Source: Hypanus sabinus (Eukaryota). From it: a stretch of 64,000 bases of DNA. The stretch spans positions 248,001 to 312,000 of the forward strand of contig NW_026781175.1 of NCBI RefSeq assembly GCF_030144855.1. Reading direction: 5' to 3'. This document shows, piece by piece, positions 34,900-57,819 of this stretch (position 1 is its first letter; each line of letters begins with the position of its first letter). Position numbers and translations under genes: made by a program. Under the pieces are notes generated by a model, which was not told the origin of the DNA, did no database searches, and worked only from the letters and a program-made list of their open reading frames with translations.

Positions 34900-35210
34900 T
34901 GTAAAATGCGGCAGGTAGGTCGGGCACCGTGTGACACCGGTTCAAATGGGAGAACCTTCTCCCGTCACGTGATCCAGTTTCTCGCTGGCATTTCAAACGT
35001 AGGTCTGCAACATCTGCGGGATTTCGATTCCGACGCCCCGCCCCCGCTCTCACAGTCCCCGGATGGGCGGTGGTTTTATTTCCTTTCTGCGTTGAAGCAG
35101 TTCGTCGGCGGGGAGCCAGGGGCCGGACAAATTGATCAAGGTCGCATCGGTGAGTATTGACGCCGGTCACTAGGGGTGAACGCCACCGACAATTTCCCAT
35201 CGGTGAGTAT
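34900..35210 (+). promoter_or_regulatory. CpG-rich putative promoter / first exon with duplicated donor
   Basis: Palindrome GGGAGAA-CC-TTCTCCC (34948-34963), E-box TCACGTGA, IRF-like TTTCGATTCC and TTTTATTTCCTTTC. Two CATCG|GTGAGT donors at 35150 and 35203. Confidence 0.5.
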
Positions 35211-36704
35211 TGAGGCTGATCCCGAGGGAGAAGACTTGCTATTGTTCAGAGAGTCCCGTTAACATCCTCGATCTGGCGTCCTCGTCCCCTTCCTGTACAC
35301 AACCTCTCCGGGTGTGTCCGGGTTGTGGGACCTTCACACCGAACAGTCTGAGATGAGCCGCCGCTCAGCCCCTGGTGTTCTGGTCCCAGGAGCGGGATGA
35401 GGTGATGGTGCCAACACTAAACCCATCCATTCAGTTGCCGCTGGGAAACTTTATCTCCATCACCCGGCCCGGTATCGGATCCAAACTTCACCTGGATCGA
35501 TGCCTGGTGTCGATAATTGTTTTACATATTTCCATCACACTGGAAGCGGCCGTTCGGCCCGTTGTGTTCTTGCAGACAGAGGGTTAAACAGAGTAATCGC
35601 ACCCTCGGGAGACTCCTCCACGTGTATGAGTAGTTCCATCTTTCCCCGTTCAGACAGGACAGTCCTCTCGGGGGACTGGGAAGTTTATTTCCATCTTCTT
35701 TCCATTGCTACAACTTGCCGACATGCAGCTTATGGTTCCTGATATATGACCCTATTAATGCGAGAATTAAGTCTTTTTCATTTATCTGGGTTTCTCGGAA
35801 ATGTGTACACTCACTCCGGAATTTCCAAAGGAGCAACCCAGGCTGTCGAATATTCCCACACGATTCAAATGGGGAATCAGTGTTTGTACATCTATAGAGG
35901 TACAGTGAAAATCTTGTCTTCAGTACCATCCACACAGATCAATACATTGCAACAGTACATACAGTTGATATAATCTAAAAGAATAACATAGTGTAGCAAA
36001 TAATTCTGGTTTCAGAGAAAGTGCGGAGCAGGTTGATATGTGATACAAGGTCACATCTTGCTAGTCTGTGAGGTCAGGATCCATCTCATCACACTGGGGA
36101 ATATTCAGTTTGCTTCTAACAGCAGAACGGAAACTGTCCTTGAGCCTGATGGTATGTTTCTGCTTTATTTTATCTTCGACTCGATGGGGTGGGGGTGGTG
36201 ATGAGAAGTGAGAATGTTCAGGGTTGTGAGGATCTTTCATTATGTTGTTTGCTTTACTGAGGCAGTGGGAAGTGTAGACAAAGTCCATGGAGGGGATTTT
36301 GGTTTCTATGATGTATTCAGCTGTGTCCACAGTTCTCCGCTATTTCATGCAGTTAAAGGAAGAGCAGTAGCTGGATAAAGATGTGAATTATCGGGGTGGG
36401 AGACGTTCTGCGGAGCTTTGATAAAGCGTACAGAGTGGAACAGGACATATACCAAATTTCTTATTGTTTATTCAGGTTTTGTTTTATTGGAATCTGCTAC
36501 CTAATAGTGTGTACTATAAAGTCAGTATCTGTGTATTACAGGACGACCATCAGAAAGTGCATTTCATTCCTTCTCCCACGGGGTTCCATCTGGTCATCTC
36601 CTGCCCATCTTGTTCAACCTCCGTCCAGTCTGTATCCCATTGCCGCAATGATATATTTCAGCAATCTTTCTTCTAAACTTTGTCTTCATTGTGAAGTTTT
36701 GTTT

Positions 36705-36843
36705 NNNNNNNNNNNNNNNNNNNNNNNNNNNNNNNNNNNNNNNNNNNNNNNNNNNNNNNNNNNNNNNNNNNNNNNNNNNNNNNNNNNNNNNNNNNNNNNN
36801 NNNNNNNNNNNNNNNNNNNNNNNNNNNNNNNNNNNNNNNNNNN
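36705..36843. other. Assembly gap
   Basis: Run of N. Confidence 1.
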
Positions 36844-36849
36844 ACCAAA

Positions 36850-37860
36850 AGTTTAATTGAATACAGCACGTGGCAGGGAAAAAAGAAACAGCCACTACAC
36901 TTTTATTTTCCTCGTTACAAAGTGGCTGCACTGTTAATCCTTGTCATAGCATTTGATGTTGAGTTTGTTATTTCCTTTTTCGGTTAAATTTGTTGAGCCA
37001 TTTCCTCCGTTTCCAGGATAACAGTCCGTCAGAGCTGCAACAAATCACGAGAACTGCAAGAGGTGTTGCACATTTTTATCGCTTTGTTGTCACCGCCTCT
37101 CAGGCTAGACACAGTGACCTCGGGAGCAAATGTAACAGAATGATAGTGGGAGGAAAGGATGCTGTGAATAGTGACTGTATGGAATGTATTTCACCAGGCT
37201 CAGAATGAACAGAACTAACAAATTGGTTGGAGTGGGTAGCATTTACATTTTAACGTGTTTCTGATATTTTGTAATCATTTGCCATCTGTACATTAAAATG
37301 AAGAGAGTGAATAAAACTGCAGTTGCAGGAAATTTAAAGTAAGAAGACAAAAATACTAGAAAAGTCGAGCAGATCGATAGCATCTTGAACAGTCCCTGTT
37401 TAGATATTTGATCTTCCACCGTTTCTCCTTTCACAGATGTAACCTGATATACTGAGTTCCCAGCAGTTTACAATTTGTTCCTGCTACACTGAACCGAAAC
37501 GTGCCAGACAGCTGTGCGGGGCAAGATCCCACATTACAATGACATTATGATCAAGTCTGCTCAGTTTAGTTGCTAGATATATGCTGAAGTGTATCCTCTC
37601 ACGAACTACAGACCGGGGAACCAGCCTGATCACCGGCCCCGGCAAAGGGTCATTAAGTTCCAGTTCCACCTTCGACTGTGAATCAGAAATGTCTGGCACA
37701 CCACAGTAAATCGCCGGCATCAGAGCGTCTGAGTATGGATGATAATATTGGGCCGGTGACTGAGGATATGGAACTGGCAGTATGCGGGATTTAGTCCAAG
37801 TTGGTAATTCCACAGCTGGAATGGAATTTCCTCAGTGTGCAGTGACGCTGAAGTCTCGGG
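36850..37860 (+). repeat. Module B partial copy lacking the CR1 insertion
   Basis: Matches 22500-22820 and 28900-29235, then 20860-21430. Confidence 0.8.
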
Positions 37861-37879
37861 CGGTTAGGCATTGGTTATG

Positions 37880-38450
37880 GGGAAATGGCCGTCTGCGCCA
37901 CCTAAAAGGATATCATATCTGACAAGTATTCTGGAGATTATTGATGAGCTAAATATGAGGATAGATGAAAAAGGGCAGTGATGTTGCTCATCTGAACTTT
38001 GGAAAAGTTTGTAATAAGATCCTGCATGGCAGCTGATAAGGAAGGTTAAGTCACGTGGGATTCACGGGGAGTTAGCGAGGTGCATTCACTCCAATTACAG
38101 GATGTAGAGGGTCATGAGTGAAGATGGTGTTAGCGAATGGAGGCCAGTGACAAGTGGGATGTGCAGATCCATGTCGAGACCTCTGGAGTTCATTATTCAT
38201 GTCATTGGTTTGTATATGAATGTACTTGGCACGGTTAGAAAGTTTGATACTAAATTCCGGACTCTGGATGATATTGCAACAGGTTCAATGAATTTCAAAG
38301 ACATCTTGGATAGCGATGAAAATGGTCTGAAAAATGATGAATGGTTTTCAACTTGAACAAGTGAGAGTTGGTGCATTTTTGACAGTCAGGCCAGGGTGGG
38401 ACTCGTGTCGTGAATGGGAGGGTACTGAGCGTTGTGGACAGATTGAGAAA
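37880..38450 (+). mobile_element. Old CR1 RT fragment
   Basis: SEWRPVTSG and degenerate DKILHG motifs. Confidence 0.75.
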
Positions 38451-38699
38451 CAAAAAAAAATCATTATTACGCAACACAGAATACAATGCGGATGGAGAAC
38501 AGTTACATAACTCCTATACAAAGGCTCAGCTCTGATACAGGTTCATCCACCTGAAATACTCACATACTGTCTGTCTTGTTGAATAATTCCAGCAGTTTTG
38601 TTTTATTTTTGTTAAAGATGTTTCGCCAACTTGCTGCTTTGTAAGCATGGAGTGTCTATATTTTGGTTAACAAGGTGAAGTGTAACAATCTGGTAATAG

Positions 38700-41600
38700 C
38701 CAGATAAATTGAGATCCTGAAGTGTGTGTTTCGGGATCTAGGCAGAAGGCTGAAGAACGGGACCTCAAGGGAGGCATTCTCAGGACTGCTGCCAGTACTA
38801 CGTGATAGTGGTGGTATGAATTGGAGGAGCTGGCAGTGGAATGCGTGGCTGAGGAGTTGGTGCAGGGGGCATAGTTTTAGATTTTTGGAACATTGGGATC
38901 TCTTCTGGGGAAGGTGGGACCTGTACAGGTTGGATGGGTCGCACCTGAACTCGAGGGGGATCAATATTCTTGCTGATAGGTTTGCTAGCATGGCTCGAGA
39001 GGGTTTAAAATAATTTGCAAGGGGGATGTGACCCGGAACGATAGAGCAGTGAAAGAAGTGCATGGAGTAAAGCCAGATCTAACAAATAGACTGGCATTGA
39101 TGAAAGAGAAGCAGAATAAAGGGTGTAAAGGTAGTAATGCAGAAGGACTAAAGTGTGTGTACTTCCATGCAAGAAGCATCAGGAACAAAGTCGATGAACT
39201 GAGAGCTTGGATACGAACATGGAATTATGATGTAGGGGCCATTACGGAGACTTGGCTGGCACCAGGGCAGGAATGGATTCTCAATATTCTTGGATTTCAG
39301 TGCTTTAAAAGGGTTTGGGGGGGGGGGAAGGGCAGGAGGGGTGGCATTACTGGTCAGGGATACTATTACAGCTGCAGAAGGGTGGGTAATGTAGCAGGAT
39401 CCTCTTTTGAGTCAGTATGGGTGGAAGTCAGGAACAGGAAGGGAGCAGTTACTCTAGTGGGGGTATTCTATAGTCCCCCTGGTAGCAGCAGAGATACCGA
39501 GGAGCAGATTGGGAGGCAGATTTTGGAAAGGTGCAAAAATAACATGGTTGTTATCATGGGTGACATTAACTTCCCTAATATTGATTGGCAGTTGATTAGT
39601 TCCAAGGGTTTAGATGGGGCAGAGTTTGTTAAGTGTGTCCAGGATGAATTCCTGTCTCAGTATGTTGACAGGCCGAATGGGGGGAATGCCATACTAGATC
39701 TAGTATTGGGTAACTAACCGGGTCAGCACACAGATCTATCAGAGGGTGAGCATCTGGTTGACAGTGATCACCGCTCTCTGACCTTTAGCATTATCATGGA
39801 AAAGGATAGAATCAGAGAGGGCAGGAGAACTTTTAATTGGGGAAGGGCAAATTATGAGGGATTAAGTCTAGAACTTGTGGGTGTGAATTGGGATGTTGTT
39901 TTTGCAGGGAAATGTACTATGGACATGTGGTCGATGTTTAGGGATATCTTGCAGGATGTTAGGGATAAATTTGTCCCTGTGAGGAAGATAAAGAATGGGA
40001 GGGTGAAGGAACCATGGGTGACAAGTGAAGTAGAAAATCTAGTCAGGTGCAAGAAGGCAGCATATACGAGGTTTAGGAAGCAAGGACAAGATGTTCCTCT
40101 TGAGGAATATAGGGTAGCAAGAAAGGAGCTTAAGAAGGGGCTGAGAAGATTAAGAAAGGGGCATGAGAAGGCTTTGGCGAGTAGGATAAAGGAAAACCCC
40201 AAGGAATTCTTCAGGTATGTGAAGAAGAAAAGGATGGCAGGAGTGAAGGTAGGACTGATTAGAGATAAAGGTGGGAAGATGTGCCTGGAGGCTGTGAAAG
40301 TAAGCGAGGTCCTCAATGAATACTTCTCTTCGGTATTCACCACTGAGAGGGTACTTAATGAAGGAGAGGAAAATATGAGTGAGTTTGATGTTCTGGAGCA
40401 TAATAATATTAAGGGAGAGAAGGTGATGGAGTTGTTAAAATACATTAGGACAGATAAGTCCCCTGAGCCTGACGGAATATTCCTCAGGCTGTTCCACGAG
40501 GCAAGGGAAGAGATTGCTGAACCCCTGCTAGAATCCTTATGTCCTCGTTGTCCACGGGAATGGTACCGGAGGATTGGAGGGAGGCGAATGTTTTCCCCTT
40601 TTTCAAAAAACGTAGTAGGGATAGTCCAGGTAATTATAGACCAGTGAGCCTTACGTCTGTGGTGGGAAAGCTGTTGGAAAAGATTCTTACAGATAGGATC
40701 TGTTGGCATTCAGAGAATCATGTTCTGATCAGGGACAGTCAGCATGGCTCTGTGAAGGGCAGATCGTGCCTACCAAGCCTGATAGAGTTCTCTGAGGAGG
40801 TGACCAGGCATATAGATGAGGGTAGTGCAGTGGATGTGATCTACATGGATTTTAGTAAGGCATTTGACAAGGTTCCACACGGTAGGCTTATTCAGAAAGT
40901 CAGAAGTCATGGGATCCAGAGAAGTTTGGCCAGGTGGATTCATAATTGGCTTGCCGGCAGAAGGCAGAGGGTCGTGGTGGAGGGAGTACATTCAGATTGG
41001 AGGGTTGTGACTTGTGGTGTCCCACAAGGATTTGTTCTGGATCCTCTATTTTTTGTGATTTTTATTAGCGACCTGGATGTGGGGGTAGAAGGGTGGGTTG
41101 GCAAGTATGCAGACGACACAAAAGTTGGCGGTGTAGTAGATAGTGTAGAGGATTGTAGAAGATTGCAGAGAGACATTGATAGGATGCAGAAGTGGGCTGA
41201 GAAGTGGCAGATGGAGTTCAACCCGGAGAAGTGTGAGGTGGTAGACTTTGGAAGGACAAACTCCAAGACAGAGTATAAATTAAATAGCACGATACATGGT
41301 GGCATGGAGGAGCAGAGGGATCTGGGGGTACATGTTCACAGATCCCTGAAAGTTGCCTCACAGGTAGATAGGGTAGTTAAGAAAGCTTATGGGGTGTCAG
41401 CTTTTATAAGTCGAGCGATAGTTTTTAAGAGACGTGATGTAATGATGCAGCTCTATAAAACTGTAGTTAGGCCACACTTGGAGTACAGTGTCCAGTTCTG
41501 GTCTCCTCAGTATAGGAAGGATGTGGAAGCATTGGAATGGGTACAGAGGAGATTTACCAGGATGCTGCCTGGTTTAGAGAGTATGGATTATGATCAGAGA

Positions 41601-42005
41601 TTAAGGGAGCTAGGGCTTTACTCTTCGGAGAGAAGGAGGATAAGAGGAGACATGATAGAGGTGTACAAGATGTTCAGAGGAATAGACAGAGTGGACAGCC
41701 AGCGCCTCTTCCCCAGGGCACCACTGCTCAGTACAAGAGGACATGGTTTTAAGGGAAGGGGAGGGATGTCAAAGGGGGAAATTAGAGGAAGGGTTTCCAC
41801 TCAGAAAGTGGTTGGTGCGTGGAATGCACAACCTGAGACAGTGGTTGAAGCAGGTACAGAAGTGAAGTTTAAGAGACTACTAGACAAGTATATGAAGGAA
41901 TATAAGGTGAGGAATTTAATATGGGAGGCAGGGTTTGAGGGTCGGTACAACATTGTGTGCGGAAGGGCGTGTACTGTGCTTTACTATTCTAAGTTCTATG
42001 TTCTA
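38700..42005 (+). mobile_element. CR1 LINE: ORF1 esterase C-terminus plus near-complete ORF2 with few lesions (RT open for ~470 aa)
   Basis: LYRLDGSHLNSRG (ORF1), ITETWL, GDINFP, NYRPVSLTSVVGK, DFSKAFDKVPH, GVPQG and YADDTK. Tail TTCTATGTTCT. Confidence 0.98.
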
Positions 42006-42029
42006 ATATTTGGGAAATTAAAATCTCAC

Positions 42030-43460
42030 ACTTAATAATAACAACCCTGTTATTATTTCTTCTTTCCAGAATCCATCTCCCTATCTGCTCCTCGATGTCC
42101 CTGTTACCATTGGGTGGTCTATAAAAACACCCAGCAGAGTTGTTGGCCCCTTCCTGTTTATAAATTACACCCACCCCTCCGAGACTCAGTAGACAACCCC
42201 TCCATGACTTCCTCTTTCTCTGCATCCGTAACACTACATCTGATCAGCAGTAACTTGGTCTCTCCTCTTCTGCCTCCCTCCCTGTCATTTGAAACGTCTA
42301 AAGCCTGGCACTCTAAGTAAGTATTCCTGCCGCTGAGCCATTCAAGTCTCTGTAATGGCCGCAACATCATAGTACCAAGTGCTACTCCACGCTCTAATTT
42401 CATCCTCTTTGTTCATAATATCCCTTGCATTAAAGTAGATACATTTGAAACCATCGGTCTGAGCGCATCCCATCTCTATCGCCTGCCTATCTTCTCTCTC
42501 ACACTATTTACAAGCTTTCTTTATTTGTGAGCCAACCTCCGCTTCCTCCGTCTCTTCAGCTGTCTTCCCAATCCCCAGCAATTCTACTTTAAACTGTCCG
42601 CAATAGCCTGAGCAAATCTCCATGCCAAGATCTTGGTCCCCTTAGGATTCAAGTGCAACCAGTCTTTTGTAGAGGTCAGACCTGCCCCAAAAAAGGTCCC
42701 AATGATGCAGAAATCTGAATCTACTAGACCTCCTCCAATCCCTCCATTTATCCTCCGCTTCATTCTATTCCTAATCTCACTGTCACGAGAATACAAACTT
42801 TGAAGTCCTGCTTCTCAACTTCCTTCCTAACTACCTGCAGTCTGTTTTCAGGACTTTCTCCCTTTACTTACCTCCGTAGCTGTTCTCCTTCCCACTTAAG
42901 GGTATCGTGGACGCGATCAAAAAGATCCCGGACCCTGGCACCTGGGAGGAAAACTATCGTTCGTGTTTCTTTCTTGGTAGGCCGCCCCTCCAATAGTACT
43001 AAAACATGAGTACTTATTGTTAGGGAGGACAGCCACAGGGGTACCCCCTAGTATCTGATTCTTGCCCTTCCCTCTCCTGACTATTAATCACTTACCTCAC
43101 GAGGTCTCGGTGTCAGTACTTGCTTATTGCTCTTATCTATCCCCACTTCACTCTCCCTGACCAGAAGAACGTCATCGAACTGCATCTCCAGATCTGTAAC
43201 GTGCTCCCTAAGGAGCTGCAGCTCGACGCACCTCGTGCAGATGTGGCTGTCTGGAAATTAGGAAGTCTGAGGAACATCCCACCGCTGACACCCCAGCACA
43301 GAACATACATATTTCCTGTATCTATTCTTCACAAATAACTGACCTAGCCTCGACCTATTATCGCCGGTCCAGTTGAGGAAAAACTATTCTGTCTGCATCT
43401 ACTACTTCGCCCGCTCCTATGACGCCCGCTCTATAAAGCAGTCTCCTTTTTAAACACTTC
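42030..43460 (-). mobile_element. CR1 5' portion (5' UTR, ORF1, start of ORF2)
   Basis: Minus-strand LHLNPKGTKILA and FYRPPNGNRDIEEQIGR motifs. Confidence 0.88.
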
Positions 43461-43612
43461 CCGTTGTCCCTATACAGAATTCTCTTAAAGCTTGAAATCG
43501 ATTTGTCATGCACCACCTTTATGTTCCCCTTAAACCGTTTACCATTCACCATTAAGCCATGACTTCAGGTTGTAATCCCAACCTACCTCAGTGGAAGAAG
43601 CTTACTTGCATT

Positions 43613-43781
43613 TCTAATGCCCTTCCCTTGGACAACATCGGTGGCGTGCAGAGGGGAGACTTGCAGCTTGGGCAACTGCCGGTCTTATATTAAAAATACC
43701 TTGCCCAGGCTTGCGCCCTGGAAACTTTCCAAGGCGCAAATCCATGGTCTATCGAGACTAACGGAGGCCTACACTACACAC
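43613..43781 (+). mobile_element. Short retroposon (SINE or LINE 3' tail) nested in a CR1 fragment
   Basis: ~170-bp insert ending CCATGGTCTATCGAGACTAACGGAGGCC(TACAC)n, which splits a minus-strand CR1 3' sequence. Confidence 0.5.
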
Positions 43782-43799
43782 TGCAGATAATTTTGTAAA

Positions 43800-44922
43800 C
43801 TGCATTGCAGCAAGGCATTTGATAAAGTGCCCCATGCAAGGCTTATTGAGTAAGTAAGGAGGCATGGGTTCAAAGGGGACTTTGCTTTGTGCATCCAGAA
43901 CTGGCATGCAACAGAAGACAAAGAGTGGTTGTAGACGGTTCATATTCTGCATGGAGGTCGGTAACCAGTGATGAGCCTGAATGATCTGTTCTGGGACCTT
44001 CACTCTTCGTGATTTTTATAAATGACCGGGATTAGGAAGTGGAGGAATGGATTAGTAAATTTGCTGATGACACAAAGTTTGGAGGTGTTGTGGATGATGT
44101 GCAGGGCTGTCAAAGGACAGAGCGGGACATTGGTAGGATGCAAAACTGGGCTGAGAAGTTCATTCTGGCAGGTCAAATATGATGGCAAAATATAGTATTA
44201 ATGGTAAGATTTTTGGCAATGTGGAGGATCAGAGGGATCTTGGGGTCCTAGTCCATAGGACGCTCAAAGCAGCTGTGTAGGTTGACTCTGTGTTTAAGAA
44301 AGCGTGTGGTGTATTGGTCTTCATCAATCGTGGAATTGAATTTAGGAGCCCAGAGGTAATGTTGCAGTTACATAGGACCCTGGTCAGACCCAACTTGGAG
44401 TACGGTGCTCAGTTTTGGTATACTCACTACACGAAGGCCGTGGAAGCCATAGAAATGGTGCAGAGGAGATTTCCAAGAATGTTTTCTGGATTGGAGGGCA
44501 TGCTTTATGAGAATATGCTGAGTGAACTCGGCCTTTTCTTCTTGGAGCGACGGATGTTGAGAGGTGACCTGATAGAGGTGTATAAGATGATGAGAGGCAT
44601 TGATCTTGTGAATAGTCAGAGACTTTTTTCCCCAAGGCTGAAATTGTTGCCAGAAGATGTCAGAGATTTTAGATACTGGGGATTAGGTACAGAGGAGATG
44701 TCAGGGGTAAATTTTAAACTCAGAGAGTAGTGAGTGCGTGGAACGGGCTGCCGGCATAGGTGGTGGAGATGGATACGTTAGGGTCTTTTGGATAGGTACA
44801 TAGAGCTTTGAAAAATAGAAGGCAATGAATAGGTCTGTTAATTTCTTTAAGGTAGGGACATGTTCGGCGCAACTTTGTGGGCAGAAAGGCCTCTATTATA
44901 CCGTAGGTTTTCTGTGTTTCTA
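43800..44922 (+). mobile_element. CR1 RT plus 3' end
   Basis: KAFDKVPHA, KFADDTK and LVRPNLEYGAQFW motifs. Confidence 0.92.
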
Positions 44923-45663
44923 TCAAAACTATCAAACGTCTACATTCCAATCAATGAAGTCCTAATGTAATCGGTCTCTCCATATAATTCAGTTTTCTAG
45001 TCTTTACACTAACTTTGTATATTTTCTTCGGCCTCTTTCCATCGTACTTTTATCTTTCCTCGGGTAGCTGACTGAAATTGCATGCAATACTCCAAATTAG
45101 CCCTCACCAATGTCAACAATAAATACCATCTCCTCTTTCAGTCCTATCTACCTCTGACGCCAGTTCCAATGAATGCTCATATCCTGAGCGAAGTCTGGAA
45201 GAACGCAGCGGGTTGCTGTTTATATTTGATGTTTTCGATGAATTCAAGCACAGAATCGATTTTGCAGACAGTTGGAGAGATACAAATCCTCAGCACCAGT
45301 GGCCAGATCCCGAGTGGTGGTGTGAGGCGTCGCACATTGTGTACAGTTTAATCCAGGGCAAGCTGCTCCCAGGGTGTTCAGTGCTGGTGACTTCCCGTCC
45401 CACTGCGTTACATTTATTGGAGAAGGCAGAGAGGAGTTCCCAGTTCCTCTCCGGGTTTCTCATAGAGCTTTTCAAGGGAGATACTACTGTCAGGAGTGTC
45501 GTGTACTTATTTCGTGCCTCTCCATCCAAGAGTTTTTAACTGTGTTCGCACAATTCTTGATTCCACCTACTGGGGACTTGCTAAAACTCCTCACTGATAC
45601 CCACAGTACAATAATGGATGATTTGATAATTTTCTCATTTTTGTTGCAGGTCTCTCCTCCGAA

Positions 45664-46037
45664 ATGACATCTCAGGCCCTGGAGGAGTTTCTGGGTCCAT
45701 TTACGTATCAAAGAATCTGCCAGGTGATTGACTGGATGAAGAAGGATGTAAAACGCCAGACTGAAAAAACAGAGAGTGAAGCTGGTAAAAGGAGCCTCCT
45801 GAAAACTTTGCACTACCTGTTTGAGTCTGAGAATCGTGGGCTGGCTAAGGTCGCAGTGCGATCTGTGGAGACACTTTCCTTCAGTGGAATGTCTTTGACC
45901 CCGATTGAATGTGTAGTCTTGTCACAAGTCATCGGGCTTTCTGATACAATAAAATGTCTCGACCTGGATCGCTGCGACATTCAGCATGAAAGTCTCCAAT
46001 GGTTTGGACACGGGCTGCACAAGTGCCAGGAGTTGAG
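45664..46037 (+). CDS. Open 3' part of the NACHT exon (HD2 / first LRR)
   Basis: MTSQALEEFLGPF...LHYLFESENRGL...LDLDRCDIQ...KCQEL, then donor AG|GTAGTG in phase 2. Confidence 0.7.
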
Positions 46038-46407
46038 GTAGTGATTAAATTGTCTCTCCCTGATTATTGTAAAATTGTACTGTTTTTCTTTTGTAAAATA
46101 GCCTACACGGAACTACCTCCTGCTCTTTTCTGCACCCCAGCTACCATGTTGCCTCAGGGCTTGGGTAGCAAGAAATGAGTAGAGAGCCCTTGACACTATT
46201 GTTGACCGCTTGTTCTTCATCTACGTCCACCACACATCCATCTCCAGCCCGCACTGTGAGGGATGGTGCTCCATCCTACCCAATATTGATATCCCTTGAA
46301 CAGTCCACAACAGAGCAGTTCGGTGGGAGGAGGAGAATAATTGTCTGTCAAATGTTAGAATCCATGAAGTGTACCTTCTGACTTCTAAACACTTTGCCTG
46401 ATTTTAG

Positions 46408-46494
46408 CCTGGTAGGTAATAAGCTGGGAGACTCGGGAGTGAAATTGGTGTCTGCAGCTCTGAGGAACCCGGAGTGTAAAATACAGAAACTGTG
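46408..46494 (+). CDS. NLR LRR exon (87 nt)
   Basis: TTTTAG|...|GTAAGT. Encodes [29 protein letters not shown]. Confidence 0.9.
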
Positions 46495-46650
46495 GTAAGT
46501 ACCAGACTGTGGGAGATCGTGTTTACAGTCACTGAGTGTCTGACACTGAACATCAATGTAATCAGTAACTGTGTTAATAATAAACACTGGGGATTTGTAT
46601 CATCTCCGATCTCTTTGTGTACTTCACAACCATTATTTCTTGGCTGGAGA

Positions 46651-46870
46651 AACACGCACAGCACGCTGGAGGAACTCAGTAGGTCGGGCAACATCCATGG
46701 AAAAGAACAGTCAACTTTTCAGGCCGATACCATTCGTCAGGACTGGCGAAGGGTTTGCATCCGAAACGTTAAATGCTCTTTTCCACTGATGCTGCCCGAC
46801 CTGCTGAGTTCCTCCAGCGTGTTGTGCGTGTTGCTTTGACCACAGCATCTGCAGGGTATTTTGTGTTTCC
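46651..46870. mobile_element. Palindromic PLE-derived mini-element with hammerhead-like cores on both strands and ~16-bp TSD
   Basis: ~90-bp inverted arms at 46651-46740 and 46743-46832. Flanked by ATTTCTTGGCTGGAGA and ATTTTCTGGCTGGAGA. Confidence 0.85.
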
Positions 46871-46879
46871 GATTTTCTG

Positions 46880-47000
46880 GCTGGAGATTGCCCGTCTCAA
46901 AGATTCTGCTGCCGGGGATCTCGCCTCGGCTTCCTCTTTATTTAAATCGCAGACGGTGCTGATTTGACTAAAAGATATACTGGGAGATTCCGCAATTTTT
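46880..47000 (+). pseudogene. Dead LRR exon remnant
   Basis: LEIARLKDSAAGDLASASSLFKSQTVLI*LKDILGDS. No AG acceptor, one stop, truncated by CR1. Confidence 0.8.
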
Positions 47001-47004
47001 ATGG

Positions 47005-50000
47005 GGAGGGCGATCAACCAGATGTTTCGTTACATATTGGTACAAATGAAATAGGAAGGAAAGAAAAGAGGTCCTGAAAAGAGAATTTAGAGAGCTGGGT
47101 CGAATGCTGAGAAGCAGGACCTCCAGTGTAGCAACTTATGCATTGCTACCTATGCCATGCGCCAGTGAGGTTAGAAACAGGATTATTTGGCAGATTGATG
47201 CACGGCTGAGAACCGGTTGCAGTTGGCAGGCCTTCAGGTTCTTCGACCATTGGGATATCTTCTGTTGCAGTTATGACCTTTTCTAAAGTGACGGGCTGCA
47301 CCTGAACCAGAGAGAGACTAGATTTCTCGCAGATAGGTTTATAACAGCTGTTAGAACTGGTTTAAACAAAATCGGAGTGAAGAGACACAGATGGTTAAAA
47401 AATACAAAACATGCAGTCAGACTGTCAGGAAAGGCAGGCATAGGATAGGACAAAATTGCAGCCAGTAGGGTGAGTGCCGTCGCATTAATTATTCAGAATA
47501 AAAAAGGTAGTAAAGACAGTATTCAAGGTACTATATCCCAATGCATGGAGTACAAGAAACAAATTGAATCCTATGTTACATTACTACAGATTGTCAGGTG
47601 CATTACTGAATCGTGGCTGAAGGATGGTAGTAGTTGGAGCTGGATGTCAGAGAAAACACATAATATCAGAGGGAGAGGAAAATTCTGCGTGGCTCTGCTT
47701 GTAAAAAGTAGCATCAAAACATTAAAAACTTGTGACATAGTATCGGATGATGTTGAATCTTTGTGGGTTGAGTTATGAGAATGTAAGGATAAAAAGGCAG
47801 TTATATACGGTCCTCCCTACAGTGGCTGGAAAGTAGATCAGAGATTACAACAGGAGGTAGAAAATGCGTGTCAAATGTGCAATGGTATGATCGTCATGTG
47901 AGATTGTAACATGTAGCTTGATTGGGAAAATCAGCTTGGTAATATATCTCAAGAGAGTGAGTTTGTTGAATGACTTTTTAGAAAATCAGCTAGGAGATCA
48001 GCTGCACTGGATAGGGTGTAATGAAATGATCTGGAGGCGTTTAGGGAGCTTAAGGTAGAAGGACCTTTAGGAACTAGTGATCACAATATGAGGGCACGAC
48101 TTCAGGATTGAAGGACTGTTTTCGAACTGAAAAGCGGAGAAATTACTTTAGTCAGAAGTTAGTAAATCTGTGGAATTTGTTGTCATGAGCGGCAGTGAAC
48201 GCCATGCTATTGGGTGCACTAAATGCTGAGAGGGATAGGTCCTGGATTATCTACGACATCAAATGGTATGGAGTAAAAGCAGGGGGTGGAGATGACTGGA
48301 GGAAGTGGTTCAGCCCATGATTGAATGGAGGAGTAGACTGGATAGGCCCAATGGTCTATTTCTGATCCTAAATCTTATGGTCTTATTGTCTTATACACAT
48401 GTGTATCCCAAAGGTAAAGAAATACTCAAATGGCAAAATTGTACAACGGTGGCTGACAAGGAAAGGATAAGGTAATGTAAACATGAAAGAGAGCATACAA
48501 TAAAGTAAATGGTGGGAAGATAGAGGATTGGGAAACCCTACAGAAAACAACTAAAAGAACAATTAGAAAGGAAAAGATGAAATATGAAATCATTCTACAA
48601 ACAATATCAAACTGGATAGTAAAGGCCTTTTTCAAGTATGTTAAAACTAAAAGATAGATCAGAGATAGGGCCGGTAGAACATGAGGCAGCAGAAGGAATA
48701 ACGGGGGACAAGGAGATAGCAGATGACCTAAATGAGTATATTGCATCACTCCTCACTGTGGAAGATTATGTAATGTGTGAAGGAACAGAAGTGGGTGCAA
48801 TTACTATTACAAGGTGCACAAAAAGCTGAAAGACTTAAAAGTAAATAGGTCACCCGGCCCAGATGAACTGCACCCTAGGTTTCTGAAAGAAGAAGCACTC
48901 GAGATTCGGGCGGCACCAGAAAAGATCTTTCAAAAATCAATTGAGGAGATTACACGTAGTACACGTAGTACACGTCGGGGGTGAATTGCGTGTTGTATAT
49001 TTGAACTTCGAAGAGGCCTTTAACAAGGTGCCATACTTGAGGCTACTTTACAAGTTAAGAGCTCATGTTATTACAGGAATGTTACTAACATGGTTAGAGC
49101 TTTGACTGTCTGGTAGAAGGTAGTGAGTGGGAATAAAATGACCCATGTCTGGTTGGCTTCCAGTGACTGGTGGTGTTCCGCAAGTGTCGGTTTTGGGACC
49201 ACTTCTTTTTATGCTGTATATAAAAGACAGATGATGAAATGGATTATTTTGTTTCCAAGTTTTCAGTTATGCAAAGATCAGTGGAACGGCGGGTAGTATT
49301 GATGAAACAGAAAGAATGCAGAAGTACTTAGATAGATAAAGAGAATGGGCAATATAGTGGCAGATGAAATAAAATGTTGCAAAATGTATGGACGCGCTCT
49401 TTGATAGTAGAAATAAATGCACGGACTATTATCTAAACGAGGACAAAAACCCAAAAATCTGAGACGCAAAGAGTCTTGCGAGAGCATATGCAGAACGTCC
49501 TAATAGTTGATTTGCAGGTTGAGATGTTGATGAGGAAGGCAAATGCAATGTTAGCATTCATCTCAAGAGGTCTAGCGTTCAACAGTGGGGATTTGATACT
49601 CAGGCTTTATAAGGCACCCGTGAGGTCTCACCTTGAGTATTGTGTACAATTCAGGGCCCCTCATCTGAGAAAAGATGTGCTAGTATTGGAAGAGGTCCAG
49701 AGGAAGTTCGCAAGGATGATTACTGGAATGAAAGGATTATCATACGAGGAACTTTTGACTGCTGTGGGTCTGTACTCGCTGATATTCAGAAGGATGAGGG
49801 AGTGTCTCATTGAAACTTTTGAAATGCCTCAAAAGAATAGATGTGTGAAGAATGTTTCTCATGACGGGTGACGGGTGAGTCTAGGACAAGAGGGAACAAC
49901 CTCAAAAAAGAGATGCTGAGGAATTTCTTTAGCCAATGGGTGCAGAATTTTTTCCCACTTGACAGCTGTGCAGACCAGTCGTTGGGTAGAGATTGATGGG

Positions 50001-52040
50001 TTCTTGATTGTAAATGGCATCAAAGGTTACGGGGAGAAAGCAGGGAACTGGGCTTGAGGAAGAGAGGAATAAAAGGATCACCTATACTTTAATGGCGAAA
50101 CAGACTCGTTGGGTCAGATGGTTTTATTCTGCTCCGAAGTCTTATGGTCTTAGGTCTTCAGTCTTATGATCTTAAGATGCTGAATCCCTGCGGGTTGAAT
50201 TAAGATACTGCAAGAGTAAAATGACCATGATGGTAATTATATACAGGACGCCCAACAACAGCTGGACTGTGGACCACAGATCACGGCAGGAAATAGAAAA
50301 GGCGTGTAAAAAGGACATTGTTATGGTTTTCCTGGGAGATTTCAAAATGCAGGTCGATTGGCAAAATCAATTTGGTAATGGATCTTAAGAGAATAAGTTT
50401 TTTGAATATTTATGAGATGGCTTTTTAGAGCAGTTTATCGTTGAGCCTTCTAGGGGATCAGCTATACTGGATTGGGCGTTCTGTAATGATACGGAGGAAA
50501 TTAGGAAGCTTGTATGTCATAAAAAAAACAAATGGTAAAATAGTACAGCTATGGCTGACAAGGGAAGTCAAAGCTAACGTAAAAACAAAAGAGATGGCAT
50601 ACAACAAATCAAAAAGATACCGGTAAGAGAAAGCGTTGGGAAGTCTTTAAAAAACTACGGAGAGCAGGTAAAAGAATCATTAAGTGGAAAACGGTGAGAT
50701 TTGTAAGGAAGCAAGCAAACAATATCAAATTGGATAGCAAACGCTTTTTCAAGTATGTAACACTAAAACAGAGATGTCAATTTATATATGACCGATAGAC
50801 AATGAGGCCAAAGAAACAATATCGGCGGATAAGGAGATGGCTGATGAACTTAAACAGTATCTTACATCAGTATTCACCGTGGAAGACACGAACAGTGTGC
50901 TGATGTTGAAGGGTGTGAGGGATGAGAAGTAAATGCAGTTATTATTACAAAGGAGAAGGTCCTGAGAAAGCTGGACGCCCTAAGGATACATGTCACTTGG
51001 ATCGGATGAACTGCACCCTACTGTTCTGAAAGAGGTAGCGACAGAGGTTTTTGAGACGTTAGTGATGATTTTTCAGAAGGCACTGTACTCTGGCATGGTG
51101 CCACAGGACGTTCGAAAAATGCAAATATCTCTCCACTCTTTAAGAAAAGAAGAAAGCTGCAGGAAGAAAGCATAAACCATTTATGGAACACACTACCGTC
51201 AGTGGTTGGGAAGATATTTTAGTCATTTGTTAAGGATAACGTTATCAATTATTTGGTGAGACAGGAAAAGAAGGGAGAAAGTCAGCGTTGTTTCCTTCAG
51301 CGAAACTCCTGCCTGGGAAACCTGTTAGAATTCACTGAGAAGACTGCAAGGAGGATAGATGAAAGAAATGCATTGAATGCTGCAGATTTGTCAGTGTACC
51401 GCACATGAGACAGCTTACAAATTTAACTGCCTTTGGTATTGCAAGATAATTACTGGCATGGTTAGAGCATTGGCTGATTGGTTGGAGGCAGCTAGTGGGA
51501 ATGAAAAGATCCTTTTCTGGTTGGCTGAAAGTGACTAGTAGTTTTGCACAGAGCTCTGGATTGGGACCGCATCGTTTATGTTGGAAATCAATTACTTAGA
51601 TGATGGAGTCAGTGGCTTTATTGGCGTTTTGCAGATGATACGATGATTGGTGTTGAGGAAACAGATAGGCTTCAGGAAGAATAGACAGCTTAGGCGAATG
51701 GGCAAGAAAGAGGCAAGGGAAACACAATGTTGCAAAATGCATGGTCATGCACATTGTTAGTAGAAATTAATATGAAGACAATTTTCTAATCGGGGAGAAG
51801 AACATAAATTCTGAGTACAAAGATGCCAGAACACATTAAATTTTAACGTGTAGGTAGAGTCAATGATGAGAAAGGCAAATGCAATGTAGCATTTATTTCA
51901 AGACATCTAGAATACAAGAACAAGGATATGGTGCTGGGGCTTGACAACGCACTGGTGAGGCTTCGCCTTGATTATTGTGAGCACATTTGGGCTCCTCAGC
52001 TAAGGAAATATGTGCTGACATTGGAGAGGGTTCAGAGAAC
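47005..52040 (+). mobile_element. Cluster of degenerate CR1 fragments in an NLR intron
   Basis: ORF1 (FRFFDHWDIF), endonuclease (ITESWL, ESLWVEL), RT (GSDELHPTVLKE, HLEYCVQF) and several 3' tails. Confidence 0.9.
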
Positions 52041-53700
52041 ATCCTGGGTGATTGGGGTTTTTAATGATGGATGCCGCTTTTTTGAGGCATCTCCTCGAAG
52101 ATGTCTTGGATATTACGGAGGCTATTGCCCATAATGGAGTTAACTAGATTCACAAATACCAGCAATGTATTTTGAACTTGTGCAGTAGCCACAGCCAATA
52201 TAACATATTCCCATCACATAATGTACCAGTTGGTGATGCGGACAGTTAGAATGATATCCACAGTACATCACTAGGAATTTGCGAGTATTTCTCGAAATGC
52301 TCCAAATCGCCTAACACTCACAATGAAAAATAGCCTTTTATAACTGGCTTTCCTTATAACTGCATCGACGTGCGGCCAAAAGGTAGGTCTTCAACGATAT
52401 TAACACCCAGTAACGAAGTAGCTCACTCTCTCCACTTCTGTTCTTTCTGTGAGGATTGGTTCGATTTCCCTTGACTTACCCTTCCTGTCGTCATAAGCAT
52501 CTGTCTGGTCTTACTGATGTTGAGTGCAAGACTATTGCAACATCCTTGAACTATATGTTGTATCTAACTCCCGCACGCCTTTTTGCGACAATCTGAGTTT
52601 AAGCCAACTACGGTTGTATCATCAACAAATGTATAAATGGCAGTTAAGCTGTTCTTAGCCAGAGGTTCATGGGTGTAAAGAGAGAACAGTGGACTAACCA
52701 CACATCCCTGAGCTGCGCCAGTGTTGAATGTCAGTGAGATGGAAATGTTATTTCCAATCGGCACCGATGGTCTGGTCAGGAAGTCGAAGATCCTCATCAG
52801 GGAGCGGTCCAGAAACTTTGGTCCTGTAGCATTTCTAACTGAATTGTAGGAATGATAGAGTCAAATATTGAGATGTAGTGAATGAACCTAAGGGTTCGCA
52901 TTATCGAGGCTCCAAGGCAGCACTGAGAGCCATTACGGTCGACTCTGCCATAGACCTATTGTGGCGATGTGCAATTTGAGTGTGTGCAAGTCCTTGCTGA
53001 GCCAGGAGTTCATTCCAGCCATAACCAATCTGTCACAGCATTTTATCACAGCAGATGTGAGTGCTACTGGGCGATAGTCATTATGGCAGCTCACCGTGTT
53101 CTTGGTCACTGGTAAACGTGTTGGCCTTTTGAAGCAGGCGGCTACTTCCAGATGTACTAATGAGAGAGTGGAAATGTGTATAAACACCCGAGCCAGCTGG
53201 CGGGCACAAGTTTTCACATCGTCACCAAGTATTCCATCGGGCCTTTCACCCTCCAGGTAGACAACCTTTTGTCGACCTCCGAGACAGAGATCAAAAGGTC
53301 ACCGGATGCTGTAATTTTACTCTCCCTTTCAAAGCATGCGTGGCCGGCAGGCATTACTGCCATTCGTGGTAATGCTTCGCTTTGTAGGAAGTATTGGCAT
53401 GCAATCTCTGCCAGAGATGACGTGCATTTAATGTCACTGTCCACCGTGCTTCGAATTCTTCCGCAGATCTTGAAGTAGCCCTCCGAATGTCACACTTGGT
53501 ATTCTTGTTCAGCCCAAGGTCGCCTGATTTAAATGCCACAGACCTATCCCTCAGCAGACTTCAAAACTCTTGGTTCATCCATTGCTTTTGATTCGTGTAT
53601 ACTCATACTGATACAAGCAGATTTTAATGAAGTCTGTGACAGCAGTGATGTATTCGTTCAGACTCAATGTTGAATCACTGAATACAGTTCAGTCCACTGG
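52040..53700 (-). mobile_element. Rex1/Babar LINE (degenerate)
   Basis: [35 protein letters not shown] and FVDDTTVVGL. Confidence 0.9.
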
Positions 53701-53762
53701 AAGAATAAGCTCTGGCGACCTGTCTCTCTGTGTCCTTCACCCTCACTCTCTCTCATCTCCAG

Positions 53763-53933
53763 GCTGGAGAAAGTTGATCTCACAGCTTCTGGTGTCGAGG
53801 ATCTCGTATCCGCTCTCAATATAAACAAATCACTGACGGGACTGAACCTGAGTGACAATAACCTGGGAGATTCGGGAGTGAAACTATTGATTGCAGCTTT
53901 GTGGAAACCCAAGTGTAATATAAAGAAACTGTG
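53763..53933 (+). CDS. NLR LRR exon (171 nt)
   Basis: CTCCAG|...|GTAAGT. Encodes [57 protein letters not shown]. Confidence 0.92.
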
Positions 53934-54076
53934 GTAAGTACCAGATTGTGGGAGATTGCGTTTACTGTCACTGGATGTCTGACACTGAGCATTATTTGTG
54001 TTACCGATAAACACTGGGGATTTGTACCGTCTCCTGTCTCTCTGTGTCCTTTACCCTCACTCTCTCTCATCTCCAG

Positions 54077-54247
54077 GCTGAGGTATATCGGTCTCACAGA
54101 TTCTGGTGCCGAGGATCTTATGCCCGCTCTCAGTACAAACCCATCACTGACGGAGCTGTACCTGAGTGATAATAAAATTGGAGATTCAGGAGTGAATCTG
54201 GTGTCTGAGGCTCTGAGGAACCCGGAGTGTAAAATACAGAAACTGTG
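54077..54247 (+). CDS. NLR LRR exon (171 nt)
   Basis: CTCCAG|...|GTAAGT. Encodes [57 protein letters not shown]. Confidence 0.93.
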
Positions 54248-54402
54248 GTAAGTACCAGACTGTGGGAGATTGTGTTTACAGTCACTGGGTGTCTGAAACT
54301 GAACATTAATGTGATCAGTAATTGTGTTACTGATAAACTCTGGGGATTTGTACCGTCTCCTTTCTCTCTGTGTCCTTCACCCTCACTCTCTCTCATCTCC
54401 AG

Positions 54403-54570
54403 GCTGAGGGGTGTCGATCTCACAGATTCTGGTGCCAATGGTCTCATCTCCGCTCTCAGTACAATTGGATCACTCACGGAGCTGGACCTGAGTTACAACT
54501 CGCTCACAGACCAATTTGTCTCCGCTCTCCACCACTTCATCCTGACTCATCCGAGGCTGATGCTGATATG
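54403..54570 (+). CDS. NLR LRR exon (168 nt)
   Basis: CTCCAG|...|GTAAGT. Encodes LRGVDLTDSGANGLISALSTIGSLTELDLSYNSLTDQFVSALHHFILTHPRLMLIW. Confidence 0.92.
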
Positions 54571-54731
54571 GTAAGTGTGCTAATGCTCAATGTGATAAAA
54601 TACCAGCGGATCCGCGGGTTTTCTGGTGATATTTGTCTGTCAGTGTTGTGGAAACAATAAACCCCAGTCACCTGTTACTGATACTGTTGTGTAATTTGGT
54701 TATTTCATCTTTATTCCTCTAACTGTTTCAG

Positions 54732-54819
54732 GCTGCGGTGCAATCGTTTCAGTGAAATCAGGAAGAAGGAAATGAAATCGCTGGGAGAATCCAAATATGG
54801 ACTACAAGTGGACATCTGA
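54732..54819 (+). CDS. NLR terminal coding exon
   Basis: TTTCAG| acceptor. Encodes LRCNRFSEIRKKEMKSLGESKYGLQVDI*. Confidence 0.88.
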
Positions 54820-54924
54820 ATTCCTGAACATTCCCGCCCGTGGGATGGGGATATTTTGGCTGATTCCCGCACTCCGCTTAATTGATCACTCTCCCCTTTA
54901 ATTCCCAACGATTATAAGAGATGT

Positions 54925-55445
54925 TAAATCCAATTCTCATCCCAATATGTCAATCCACAGTTTCCTTGATGAGGCCTCAACTAGGTTTGAGGAACAACAC
55001 CTGGGTAGGATCCAAACTGCTGGATAGAACATCGATTTAACAAGCACCAGCCACATCCCCTTCACCAATCCCTGTCCCCTTTTTCCTCTCTCATCTTACT
55101 TCCTGGCTTGCCCATCACCTTTCTAGGGCGTCCGTTCCCGTTTTATTTCTTCCATCACATTCTGTCCTCTCCTATTGGGTTCCCCATTCTCTAGCCTACA
55201 TCTCTTTCACCTAACAACGCAGATCTTTATTTTACTCACCTCTCCCCCTGTTTTAACTATAACCATGTGTTTCTCCCTCCCTTTTCCCCACCTTCCAACT
55301 CTGACCCCATTGTTTCCCTGTCCTGATGAAGTGTCTCGGCCTGAAACGTCGGCTGTACTCTTTACCACAGATGCTGCCTGTGCTTGACTTTTGTGTTCCT
55401 CCACTATTCTGTGTGCATTTCCAGAATCAGCGGATTTACTTTTGC
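54925..55445 (+). mobile_element. PLE 3' end/pLTR just downstream of the NLR stop
   Basis: GIY-YIG tail remnant (EEQHL), pyrimidine-rich UTR and pLTR. Confidence 0.82.
55320..55354 (+). ncRNA. Minimal hammerhead ribozyme motif (PLE pLTR)
   Basis: GUC-CUGAUGA-A-GUGUCUCGGCCU-GAAA-CGUC/GGC. The core is intact and helix II is weakened. Confidence 0.6.
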
Positions 55446-55869
55446 TTGTAACGGGCCCTGGCTCCTGCCTCGGTCTATGACATCAAAGGAGGTCCCACAA
55501 GCGTAATCCTGCTTGCTGTTCAGCGACACTTCTTCCTCTGAATGTCCGGATCCGAGTGCTCCCGAAATTAGGCCCTGAGGAATTATACAGACAGGAATGG
55601 GCCGGGGGTATGGCACAGCCTGGGACACCAGTGTCCTTGGATGGGATTATCCGCGGAGGGAATCTTATGCTCACTTTGGGCCAAGGACGGTATACTGAGC
55701 AATCTGGACGACATAATTATTTAAATTGACAAATACCTCGGTAGTGAGCTTGGGTCTACAGTGATACCGGACACGGTCCTGACGTGGAGAATGATGGTGA
55801 GAAAAAGAACTGGTTATTCAAACTGTCACTCGCTGTCGCCAGTCAGTTAATTGTGTGTGATTGTGATAG

Positions 55870-57070
55870 TATCATAAGAACATGGGAATAGGAGCAGGAG
55901 TAGACCAACTGGCCCAAAACTGTTCCGCCATTCGATAAGATTATGACTGATGTGGCTATGGCCTCACCCCCACCTATCTGCATTTTCCGCGTACCCTATC
56001 CATTCCCCAACTATGGAAAAATGTATCCAACCGTGCCTGAAATATATTGACTGATGTACCCTCCAATGCTTCATTGGGCAAATAGTTTCACAGATTCATG
56101 ACTCTCTGGAAAAAGCAGTTCCGCCTCATCTCCATCCTAAAACTACTCCCTGGAATCTTGAGGCTATATCCACTAGTTATGGTCTCACCTATCAGAGGGA
56201 ACAGTTTCGCCTTTATCTTATCTATCACTTCCATATAAGATCTCCTTTCATTCTTCTGAATACCAGCGAGTACAGTCCCAGGCAGCTCAAACTGTCCTCA
56301 TAGTCTAAACTCTTCATCTCTGGATCAACCTGGTGAACTTCCCCCGCACTGTCTCCAAAGCCAGTATATCCTTCTTCAATTAAGGAGACCAGAAAAGCGT
56401 GTAGTACTCCCGGTGCGGCCTCACCTGCACCGGTACCCTGCACAGCTGCAGCATAAACTACCCCTCCCCCGCCCCAGCTATTCAGCTTAAAGCTGAATAG
56501 TTATGGGAATGGCTACGATCATGGTCCCATCACGGTTCAAGTGAAGCCCGTCCTATTAGTACAGCTCCCACCTTTCCTAAACCTTTGACATGTTCCCGTG
56601 AATTCAGATTCACTTCTCCCAGACCAATCCTGGAGCCGGGCATTTAACTCACTAACCTTCTTGACCCTATGCCAATTTGCATCTGGCTCAGAGATTACCA
56701 CCATTTTGGTGCTTTTTTTTTGAAATTTAGTCCCTAGCAGCTCAAATTCTCTCAGCATACCTCTTACCTCGTTTTTCCTATGTCGTTGGCACTCACACGG
56801 ACCACGACAACGGGAGCTTTCCCCACCCACTGCAATTCCTCTGCAGGTTTGATAAGATGTCCCGAACCCGGGCACCAGGCCGGCAACATAACCTTCTGGA
56901 CTCTTTATCCTTGCGACCGAGAACTCTGTCAATTCCACTGACTATACCACCGCATTTCTCTTCTCTCCCACCTCCCCAACCCCCTTGAATAGCTCCTTGA
57001 ACTACGGTGCCACCGTTAGGTTGCTCATCCTTCCTACAGTCCCCGTAATCTACACAGGGAGCAAGAATCT
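55870..57070 (-). mobile_element. CR1 fragments (3' end at 55870-56450, ORF1 at 56510-57070)
   Basis: LGLYSLVFRRMKGDLI and ELNARLQDW motifs on the minus strand. Confidence 0.85.
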
Positions 57071-57075
57071 GAGAC

Positions 57076-57205
57076 CAACACGTACAAACAAGCTGGATGA
57101 ACTCAGTAGGTCGGGCAGCATTCGTTAACCGCTCCTGTCAACTGCTGAGTTCCTGAGTTCATCCAGCTTGTTTGTACGTGTTGATTTGACCACAACATCT
57201 GCATT
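57076..57205. mobile_element. Palindromic PLE-derived mini-element with perfect 31-bp inverted arms
   Basis: 57076-57106 is the exact reverse complement of 57153-57183. It has the same TTTGACCACA.CATCTGCA tail as 46651-46870. Confidence 0.88.

Positions 57206-57786: not shown

Positions 57787-57819
<33 letters not shown>

Follow-up and report, generated by a model that had tools for sequence, protein, structure and literature searches.

Whether the leucine-rich repeat (LRR) end of a NOD-like receptor (NLR) can outlive the NACHT domain that once preceded it is the question raised by a locus of the stingray Hypanus sabinus, which was analysed in a window of 64 kb (the whole stretch of DNA under study, contig NW_026781175.1; all positions are coordinates of this window). 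An LRR-only protein had been proposed to survive here inside a broken NLR, and such a NACHT-less product is borne out by a RefSeq protein of identical sequence, by a second RefSeq model that is spliced into position 45650, by contigs from RNA-like sequencing runs and by an ortholog of 352 amino acids (aa) in a second stingray genus. The reading preferred here, to which a probability of roughly 0.6 is assigned, is that of a real NACHT-less, ribonuclease-inhibitor-like LRR gene, derived from a 5'-truncated NLR and probably acting in trans.

By direct reading, six coding exons starting from the ATG at 45664 add up to 1059 nt and encode 352 aa and a stop codon at 54817–54819, with AG..GT at all internal exon boundaries and every exon in phase, and each detail of this predicted arrangement was reproduced on re-reading; the window contains three N gaps and the exons are free of them. 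The product is identical at 352 of 352 residues to RefSeq XP_059816678.1 (P0236), whose recorded coding sequence (CDS) span of 9156 nt equals 45664–54819. Pfam LRR_6 was detected in the 352-aa protein at 1.5e-16 and LRR_6 repeats were found in the 3' exons, and as the stop codon lies in the last exon, nonsense-mediated decay is not expected. One decayed LRR exon, in which similarity to an LRR exon is down to 41% (E 0.13), had been predicted to be skipped through the loss of its AG, which agrees with its state and its distribution as given in Table 1.

The NACHT domain with its Walker A (GxxGxGKT/S) and Walker B motifs is absent from the product, which begins downstream of it. The back half of NACHT is recognised by Pfam at 45213–45536 (2.6e-9), and when full-length relatives were mapped over the whole window, only residues ~452–527, 659–683 and 686–734 of P0009 (a full-length H. 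sabinus NLR of 1029 aa) were found to survive, at 45210–45661, and neither a Walker A nor FISNA nor an N-terminal domain was detected at any place in the 64 kb. The stretch from Walker B to the TSRP motif occupies 45210–45437, the Walker B of the remnant reading LLFIFDVFDEF and that of the relatives LLFIFDGLDEF; about 131 aa are deleted at 45437/45438, and the frame shifts near 45513–45518 and again near 45613–45650. It was confirmed that the lesions (Walker A gone, Walker B altered, one deletion, two frameshifts) all lie upstream of 45650, as had been claimed. The acceptor proposed immediately before this position also reads as predicted, TTTTCTCATTTTTGTTGCAG followed by G, and RefSeq XP_059818677.1 splices into exactly 45650. 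The open reading frame (ORF) across the acceptor reads F-L-I-F-V-A/G-L-S-S-E-M, which is the HD2 motif (FLRFVAGLSS), and the intact relatives P0005 and P0009 read FEVFLRFVAGLSSPMT uninterrupted at the same place; compared with these relatives, the acceptor AG is located within the ancestral large NACHT exon and is no new intronic element, the start Met being a conserved internal residue. The notion of a chance acceptor in Phe/Leu-rich coding sequence, followed by an ORF open by luck, was dropped because an RNA-like contig ends precisely at 45649 and at 46037 and because a RefSeq model of 438 aa enters at 45650.

This longer model, XP_059818677.1 (P0235, 438 aa), consists of the 352-aa protein and 86 additional N-terminal residues. 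Its residues 1–82 match 34906–35151 at 100% (tblastn), and the end of this 5' exon reads GGTCGCATCG/GTGAGT, so that the exon ends at 35149; the ORF of the exon is in frame, its two other ATGs, located at 34946 and 35063, do not share this frame, and the exon shows a CpG observed/expected ratio of 1.1 and a GC content of 0.57. The last G of the exon and the GT at 45650–45651 together form the Gly of the GRI-G-LSSEMT junction. For the 86-aa extension no significant relatives were found among the retrieved family proteins and it is missing from the H. akajei model; on this comparison it is not treated as a domain, and since the H. akajei model does without it, the conserved product is the 352-aa ORF. 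Both H. sabinus proteins, P0235 and P0236, fall in the 90% cluster of the H. akajei protein P0130. The locus occurs twice in assembly GCA_030144855.1 (unplaced contigs of 546,960 and 226,111 bp) with identical 352-aa coding sequences, a difference of 23 nt in the span from 5' exon to stop, the P0235 locus being the shorter one, and differently annotated start codons; the two copies probably represent haplotigs left in the assembly or else a duplication of very recent date. The donor motif CATCGGTGAGTATTGA is present twice, 54 nt apart (~35145–35160 and ~35199–35214), as possible alternative donors, of which only the first fits the 438-aa model because the second would add an in-frame TGA.

Table 1. 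Features of the LRR-only locus in window coordinates
Feature	Position	Strand	Description
5' exon	34906..35149	+	CpG-rich, promoter-like, with GC box and CACGTG; last bases ...ATCG, followed from 35150 by the donor GTGAGT
First intron	35150..45649	+	10.5 kb; LINE (long interspersed nuclear element), reverse transcriptase debris (~43500-44900), dead NACHT remnant
Dead NACHT/HD2 remnant	45210..45661	+	Pfam NACHT; tblastn of P0009, P0017 and P0015; three-frame translation
Polypyrimidine tract and AG acceptor	45630..45649	+	TTTTCTCATTTTTGTTGCAG, then G; originates from the F-L-I-F-V-A-G codons of the large NACHT exon of the ancestor
First coding exon	45650..46037	+	ATG 45664; 45664-46037 = 374 nt; HD2 tail (four helices) and first two LRRs
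Half-LRR exon	46408..46494	+	87 nt; 46037>46408 GT..AG joint in two RNA-like runs
Palindromic repeat	46648..46835	.	93-nt arms, 81% complementary, 2 nt apart; high-copy, just upstream of the dead LRR exon
Decayed LRR exon, skipped	46880..47000	+	TG in place of the AG acceptor, GT donor gone; missing from both 352-aa orthologs
LRR exon	53763..53933	+	171 nt; identical to RefSeq P0236
LRR exon	54077..54247	+	171 nt
LRR exon	54403..54570	+	168 nt
Terminal coding exon	54732..54819	+	88 nt; C-terminal peptide homologous to that of full-length relatives

Four sequencing runs (X1, X2, X4 and X5), none of them annotated as RNA, were mapped to 43000–48000 (at most 23% of sampled words). Two of them, X4 and X5, have the character of DNA, with contigs that cross exon/intron borders, and X1 and X2 behave as RNA, with a depth of 0 in the 46037–46408 intron and a GT..AG joint 46037>46408 that is present in both and not in X4 or X5. 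A single X1 contig of 389 nt, at a depth of 387.5, spans exactly 45649–46037 with six differences from the window and is ~50–100 times deeper than the background, the non-exonic X1 contigs showing depths of 2–9; a de Bruijn contig start at 45649 is what is predicted, since the spliced (...ATCG/GTC) and genomic (...GCAG/GTC) forms share G45649 and differ at 45648. The contig carries S38C and R66G, which are the states of H. akajei XP_072892589.1 and the sole two exon 1 differences from the window, from which we infer that X1 comes from H. akajei or from a species very close to it. The repeat/NACHT junction at 44931–45284 is also spanned by an X1 contig, so the 5' truncation is common to that species. 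DNA contigs carrying two other species labels are collinear across 45437–46116, the NACHT remnant of the relatives carries indels in the mapped contigs, and the loose contig ends beyond 46495 represent an uninformative mixture of paralogs. Of the splice junctions in the original prediction, 46037>46408 was thus recovered as a joint and the first coding exon was delimited by contig ends at 45649 and 46037 in the sister species; no joint was seen for 35149>45650 or 46494>53763.

The ortholog, H. akajei XP_072892589.1 (P0130, annotated as 'ribonuclease inhibitor-like'), was found by a word search with the alignment of a 352-aa relative and exon pieces of the window; it is likewise 352 aa long, aligns without gaps and is 90.3% identical. 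Its CDS span is 9073 nt against 9156 nt, a net difference of 83 nt that, with ungapped proteins, shows the introns to have gained or lost sequence and the CDS not, and all ten splice sites are retained in both species. A length-limited word search with exon 1 returned only short stingray and skate RefSeq models starting from the same Met, with 60–69% identity; the exhaustive search gave 115 relatives, all of them shark or ray NLRs and some exactly 352 aa long, and the sole match of exon 1 in a PDB sequence search was a weak one to NLRX1 (E 0.009). Against full-length elasmobranch NLRs the protein shows 61–69% identity over all 352 aa, and for exon 1, its best-conserved part, identity to any paralog does not exceed 69%. 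In the family tree P0236 and P0130 form a 100/100-supported clade, the sole clear cross-species pair, which is nested in the stingray NLR clade, and this nesting, together with the NACHT remnant lying in the same orientation directly upstream, identifies the gene as a descendant of an NLR. The private stem of the pair measures 0.66 changes per site and its tips 0.07 and 0.09; the pair deviates from the family consensus at 19–20% of the conserved columns, compared with 1.5–13.6% in 30 other members, and shares 36 private substitutions, 23 of which are in exon 1. On these sequence measures the lineage is the most divergent of its family.

Selection was assessed by simulation, the neutral rate being taken from single-copy non-coding X4 contigs compared with the window (59/1315, d ~4.5%), neutral change being simulated on the CDS at d = 4.5%, and amino-acid changes being counted against the H. 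akajei ortholog. For exon 1 (125 aa) 12.3 amino-acid changes were expected and 2 were observed (P(≤2) = 3e-4, simulation); its six nucleotide differences comprise ~4 synonymous ones, which is the neutral level, and 2 non-synonymous ones, and the pattern is one of protein-level constraint on exon 1 (HD2 tail and first LRRs) in this frame. Within the former coding sequence three states were distinguished, the NACHT part being neutral or decayed, exon 1 not neutral, and the LRR exons without indel or stop, with no indel in the 1059 nt of the CDS. Purifying selection is shown for the first coding exon only, and the LRR exons have evolved at or above the neutral rate with frame and splice sites kept. 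The expected signature of selection on the 3' exons was in this way obtained in part, for exon 1, and did not extend to the LRR exons, whose amino-acid rate is at or above neutral. The suggested role of a decoy or ribonuclease-inhibitor-like regulator is therefore a putative one, put forward by analogy.

A number of observations weigh against a functional LRR-only protein, several of which are at the same time those expected from the main rival, a transcribed unitary pseudogene, in which a surviving or captured promoter and a cryptic acceptor would yield a transcript, the ORF would still be open as elasmobranch DNA evolves slowly, and there would be no functional protein, or the RNA alone would matter. 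In the LRR exons (227 aa) 21.6 amino-acid changes were expected and 32 were observed (P 0.015, simulation), and the overall amino-acid divergence of 34/352 equals the neutral expectation of ~34 at d = 4.5%. Family-invariant residues have been dropped from the LRR exons in both lineages, examples being three losses of the PECKIQ Cys in H. akajei and the changes K251N and D281G in H. sabinus, and the beta-strand (concave) face shows no excess of the differences between the orthologs. The probability of no stop by substitutions alone is 0.14, and the chance under neutrality of an intact ORF with intact splice sites in H. akajei, roughly estimated at ~0.04 after allowing for the locus having been selected for its open ORF in H. 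sabinus, is suggestive without being decisive. Among the 229 retrieved family models, 27 begin at the same Met, five codons past the acceptor, and others at a few recurrent internal Mets; with dozens of truncated family RefSeq models that start at conserved internal Mets, annotation alone is weak support. A poly(A) signal is not nearby, no AATAAA or ATTAAA being present in 54820–57812 and the first canonical one being at 57813. The RNA status of X1 and X2 is presumed, the basis of the junctions 35149>45650 and 46494>53763 is RefSeq models and contig ends with reads from the sister species only, and the 352-aa product is a predicted protein with putative partners.

What speaks against the transcribed pseudogene is that exon 1 has accumulated so few amino-acid changes with synonymous change at the neutral level, that the CDS is indel-free over its whole length where the introns are a net 83 nt apart and the NACHT remnant of relatives carries indels, that the ten splice sites have all been kept in both species, and that the X1 exon contig stands so far above background depth. 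On balance, the pseudogene is regarded as unlikely, and as the strongest of the competing accounts.

The 3' exons might also have been refreshed by gene conversion from intact paralogs, the LRR-only product itself not being selected, and the LRR exons do form repeated units: together with their introns they make up a 314-bp tandem module at 53719–54498 (2.4 copies, 82% matches), in which the intron polypyrimidine tracts and donors are repeated together with the exons. The H. akajei exon 4 changes D219A, A222V and Q265K are the states of exon 3, which makes conversion between the LRR exons of the gene itself plausible. Conversion from paralogs would erase a signature such as the 36 private substitutions and the stem of 0.66, and it is opposed as well by the high share of off-consensus columns in P0236 and P0130 and by the low identity of exon 1 to every paralog; the homogenisation by paralogs that had been considered earlier is therefore not supported for the whole gene, whose lineage is the most divergent of the family, and we hold this explanation to be improbable. 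A mis-assembled or chimeric locus, or a merely ab initio model, is very improbable. The locus does occur in two near-identical copies on scaffolds that are unplaced (547 kb and 226 kb), with three N gaps in the window and none within exons, but the same structure was independently assembled and annotated in a second genus, the DNA contigs of the two other species labels are collinear over 45437–46116, and the RNA-like contigs respect the exon ends.

The structure of the product was predicted by AlphaFold2 with a 38-sequence alignment. The model (pLDDT 91.3, pTM 0.87) contains four helices, formed by the HD2 tail at residues 3–65, which cap eleven strand-helix LRR units, and in Foldseek it is matched best by complexes of ribonuclease inhibitor and by the LRRs of NLRP3, NLRP9 and NOD2, TMq reaching 0.83 among the RNH1 and NLRP3 LRR matches. 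Under the preferred reading of a real LRR-only gene, the ancestor would have been an elasmobranch NLRP3-like NLR that lost its N-terminal domain, FISNA and the Walker A region, after which the remaining NACHT would have decayed. Transcription would start from the CpG-rich 5' exon, the 10.5-kb intron with its transposon debris and dead NACHT would be spliced out to the AG at 45649, inside the FVA/GLS codons, and five further exons would follow, giving a product of 352 aa, or of 438 aa with the ATG of the 5' exon, with the four HD2-tail helices and eleven ribonuclease inhibitor-type LRRs. With no nucleotide-binding and no effector domain, the product would be expected neither to oligomerise nor to signal by itself, and so action in trans is most likely. 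In NLRs the LRR domain folds back onto the NACHT and also makes contacts with other LRRs, and because such LRR-NACHT and LRR-LRR contacts are established, a trans role can be proposed, with which the constrained HD2-tail/first-LRR segment also fits. Through the conserved face formed by its HD2 tail and first LRR, the protein might bind to the NACHT or the LRR of full-length paralogs or, alternatively, sequester a ligand or cofactor of theirs, and by either route paralog activation would be damped or tuned, as RNH1 damps inflammasomes. By this analogy, the gene probably acts by trans-regulation of paralogous NLRs.

The gene shares features with several known systems and differs from each of them. 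Elasmobranch NLRP3-like and NLRC3-like NLRs (H. sabinus XP_059816349.1, 1029 aa; Mobula birostris XP_072131664.1) are 61–69% identical to it over the HD2 tail and LRRs and have the same phase-matched LRR exon layout of 87/171/171/168/88 nt and the same C-terminal peptide, and the intronic remnant scores as NACHT; unlike them, the product is without N-terminal domain, FISNA, NACHT, WHD and HD1, and its first coding exon starts at an acceptor that lies inside the single large exon of the intact members. RNH1 is likewise an LRR-only horseshoe of alternating 28/29-residue A/B-type ribonuclease inhibitor repeats and is the top Foldseek match (3tsr, 4peq and 1a4y; E ~1e-21, TMq 0.77–0.78), and as an LRR-only protein reported to damp inflammasome activation it offers the closest functional analogy (PMC8922048). 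Orthology or closest kinship with RNH1 is not indicated, as identity in the structural alignment is 27–31% compared with 65–69% to NLR paralogs, and the protein has 11 repeats with a 65-aa helical HD2 cap, against 15–16 repeats in RNH1, and is nested in the NLR clade. Pyrin-only and CARD-only proteins, which modulate full-length innate sensors (review PMC3775265), resemble the gene in being fragments of sensor genes that survive as stand-alone genes; they keep the N-terminal death-fold effector domain, whereas this gene keeps the C-terminal sensor/autoinhibitory LRR and arose by exonisation from an internal acceptor and not by duplication of an effector-domain exon. In human NLRP3, the LRR exons are phase-matched and whole exons can be dropped in frame (PMC6642158), which is paralleled here by the in-frame skipping of the decayed exon 46880–47000, but there NACHT is kept and one LRR exon varies, and here the whole NACHT is constitutively spliced out.

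The internal acceptor may have a wider distribution. The H. akajei protein P0161 (588 aa) contains the family N-terminal domain (51% identical to P0009 146–266), in which ...ELSSHLK is joined directly to GLSSPMT; judged from its sequence, it seems to be a different gene that uses the same in-frame acceptor and combines effector domain and LRR without NACHT, and its joint may also be a genomic deletion at that locus. Tentatively, the AG of FVA/GLS can be proposed as a conserved in-frame alternative 3' splice site of the whole batoid NLR family, for which the P0161 joint and the 27 of 229 models starting five codons downstream of it are support, and as upstream exons end in phase 1 with G, joining to the FVA/GLS site always restores Gly-Leu-Ser. 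If this is true, intact genes could also yield NACHT-less isoforms (effector domain and LRR, or LRR only), and the studied locus would be the case in which the NACHT-less isoform became the sole product after NACHT decay.

Other features were observed in and around the locus. The first intron contains a LINE at 39028–42035 (+) with open frames of 229, 283 and 498 aa (Exo_endo_phos 4.3e-9 and RVT_1 1.6e-32, Pfam); more reverse transcriptase fragments are located at 26951–27739 and ~43800–44900, and repeat depth in the DNA runs is very high over 43500–44900. The palindromic repeat that adjoins the decayed LRR exon reaches a depth of ~10^6 in the stingray DNA runs and is abundant in the RNA-like runs too, and Rfam gave no family at gathering score in 34000–56000, the palindrome included, where no hammerhead was detected. 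The stretch 16309–16383 (+) resembles the very N-terminal end of P0009, the full-length H. sabinus NLR (MAPCCRRAGCKARSQ...), with 80% identity over 25 aa, and could be a 5' exon common to the family or else a repeat annotated as coding.

We would class the gene with the single-domain derivatives of innate-immune sensors, among which its retention of the LRR end is unusual; such offshoots, pyrin-only and CARD-only proteins for example, are established regulators, and to our knowledge all the well-known ones keep the signalling end. RefSeq already lists the gene model publicly, with names that are uninformative, a literature search found no paper on ray NLRs or on NLR-derived LRR-only genes, and the origin and conservation of the gene appear undescribed; ray RefSeq names such as 'NLRP3-like' and 'ribonuclease inhibitor-like' mask a NACHT-less gene class, which serves as a warning for annotation. 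Here the opposite outcome is documented, the sensing/autoinhibitory LRR end of an NLR alone, expressed, with a one-to-one ortholog in two stingray genera, and the ortholog pair has been kept in a family whose other members turn over rapidly. The locus is a natural case in which to ask if the LRR of an NLR, when isolated, is able to regulate full-length NLRs in trans, and it indicates that half of a dying gene can be saved by a splice acceptor concealed within its coding sequence.

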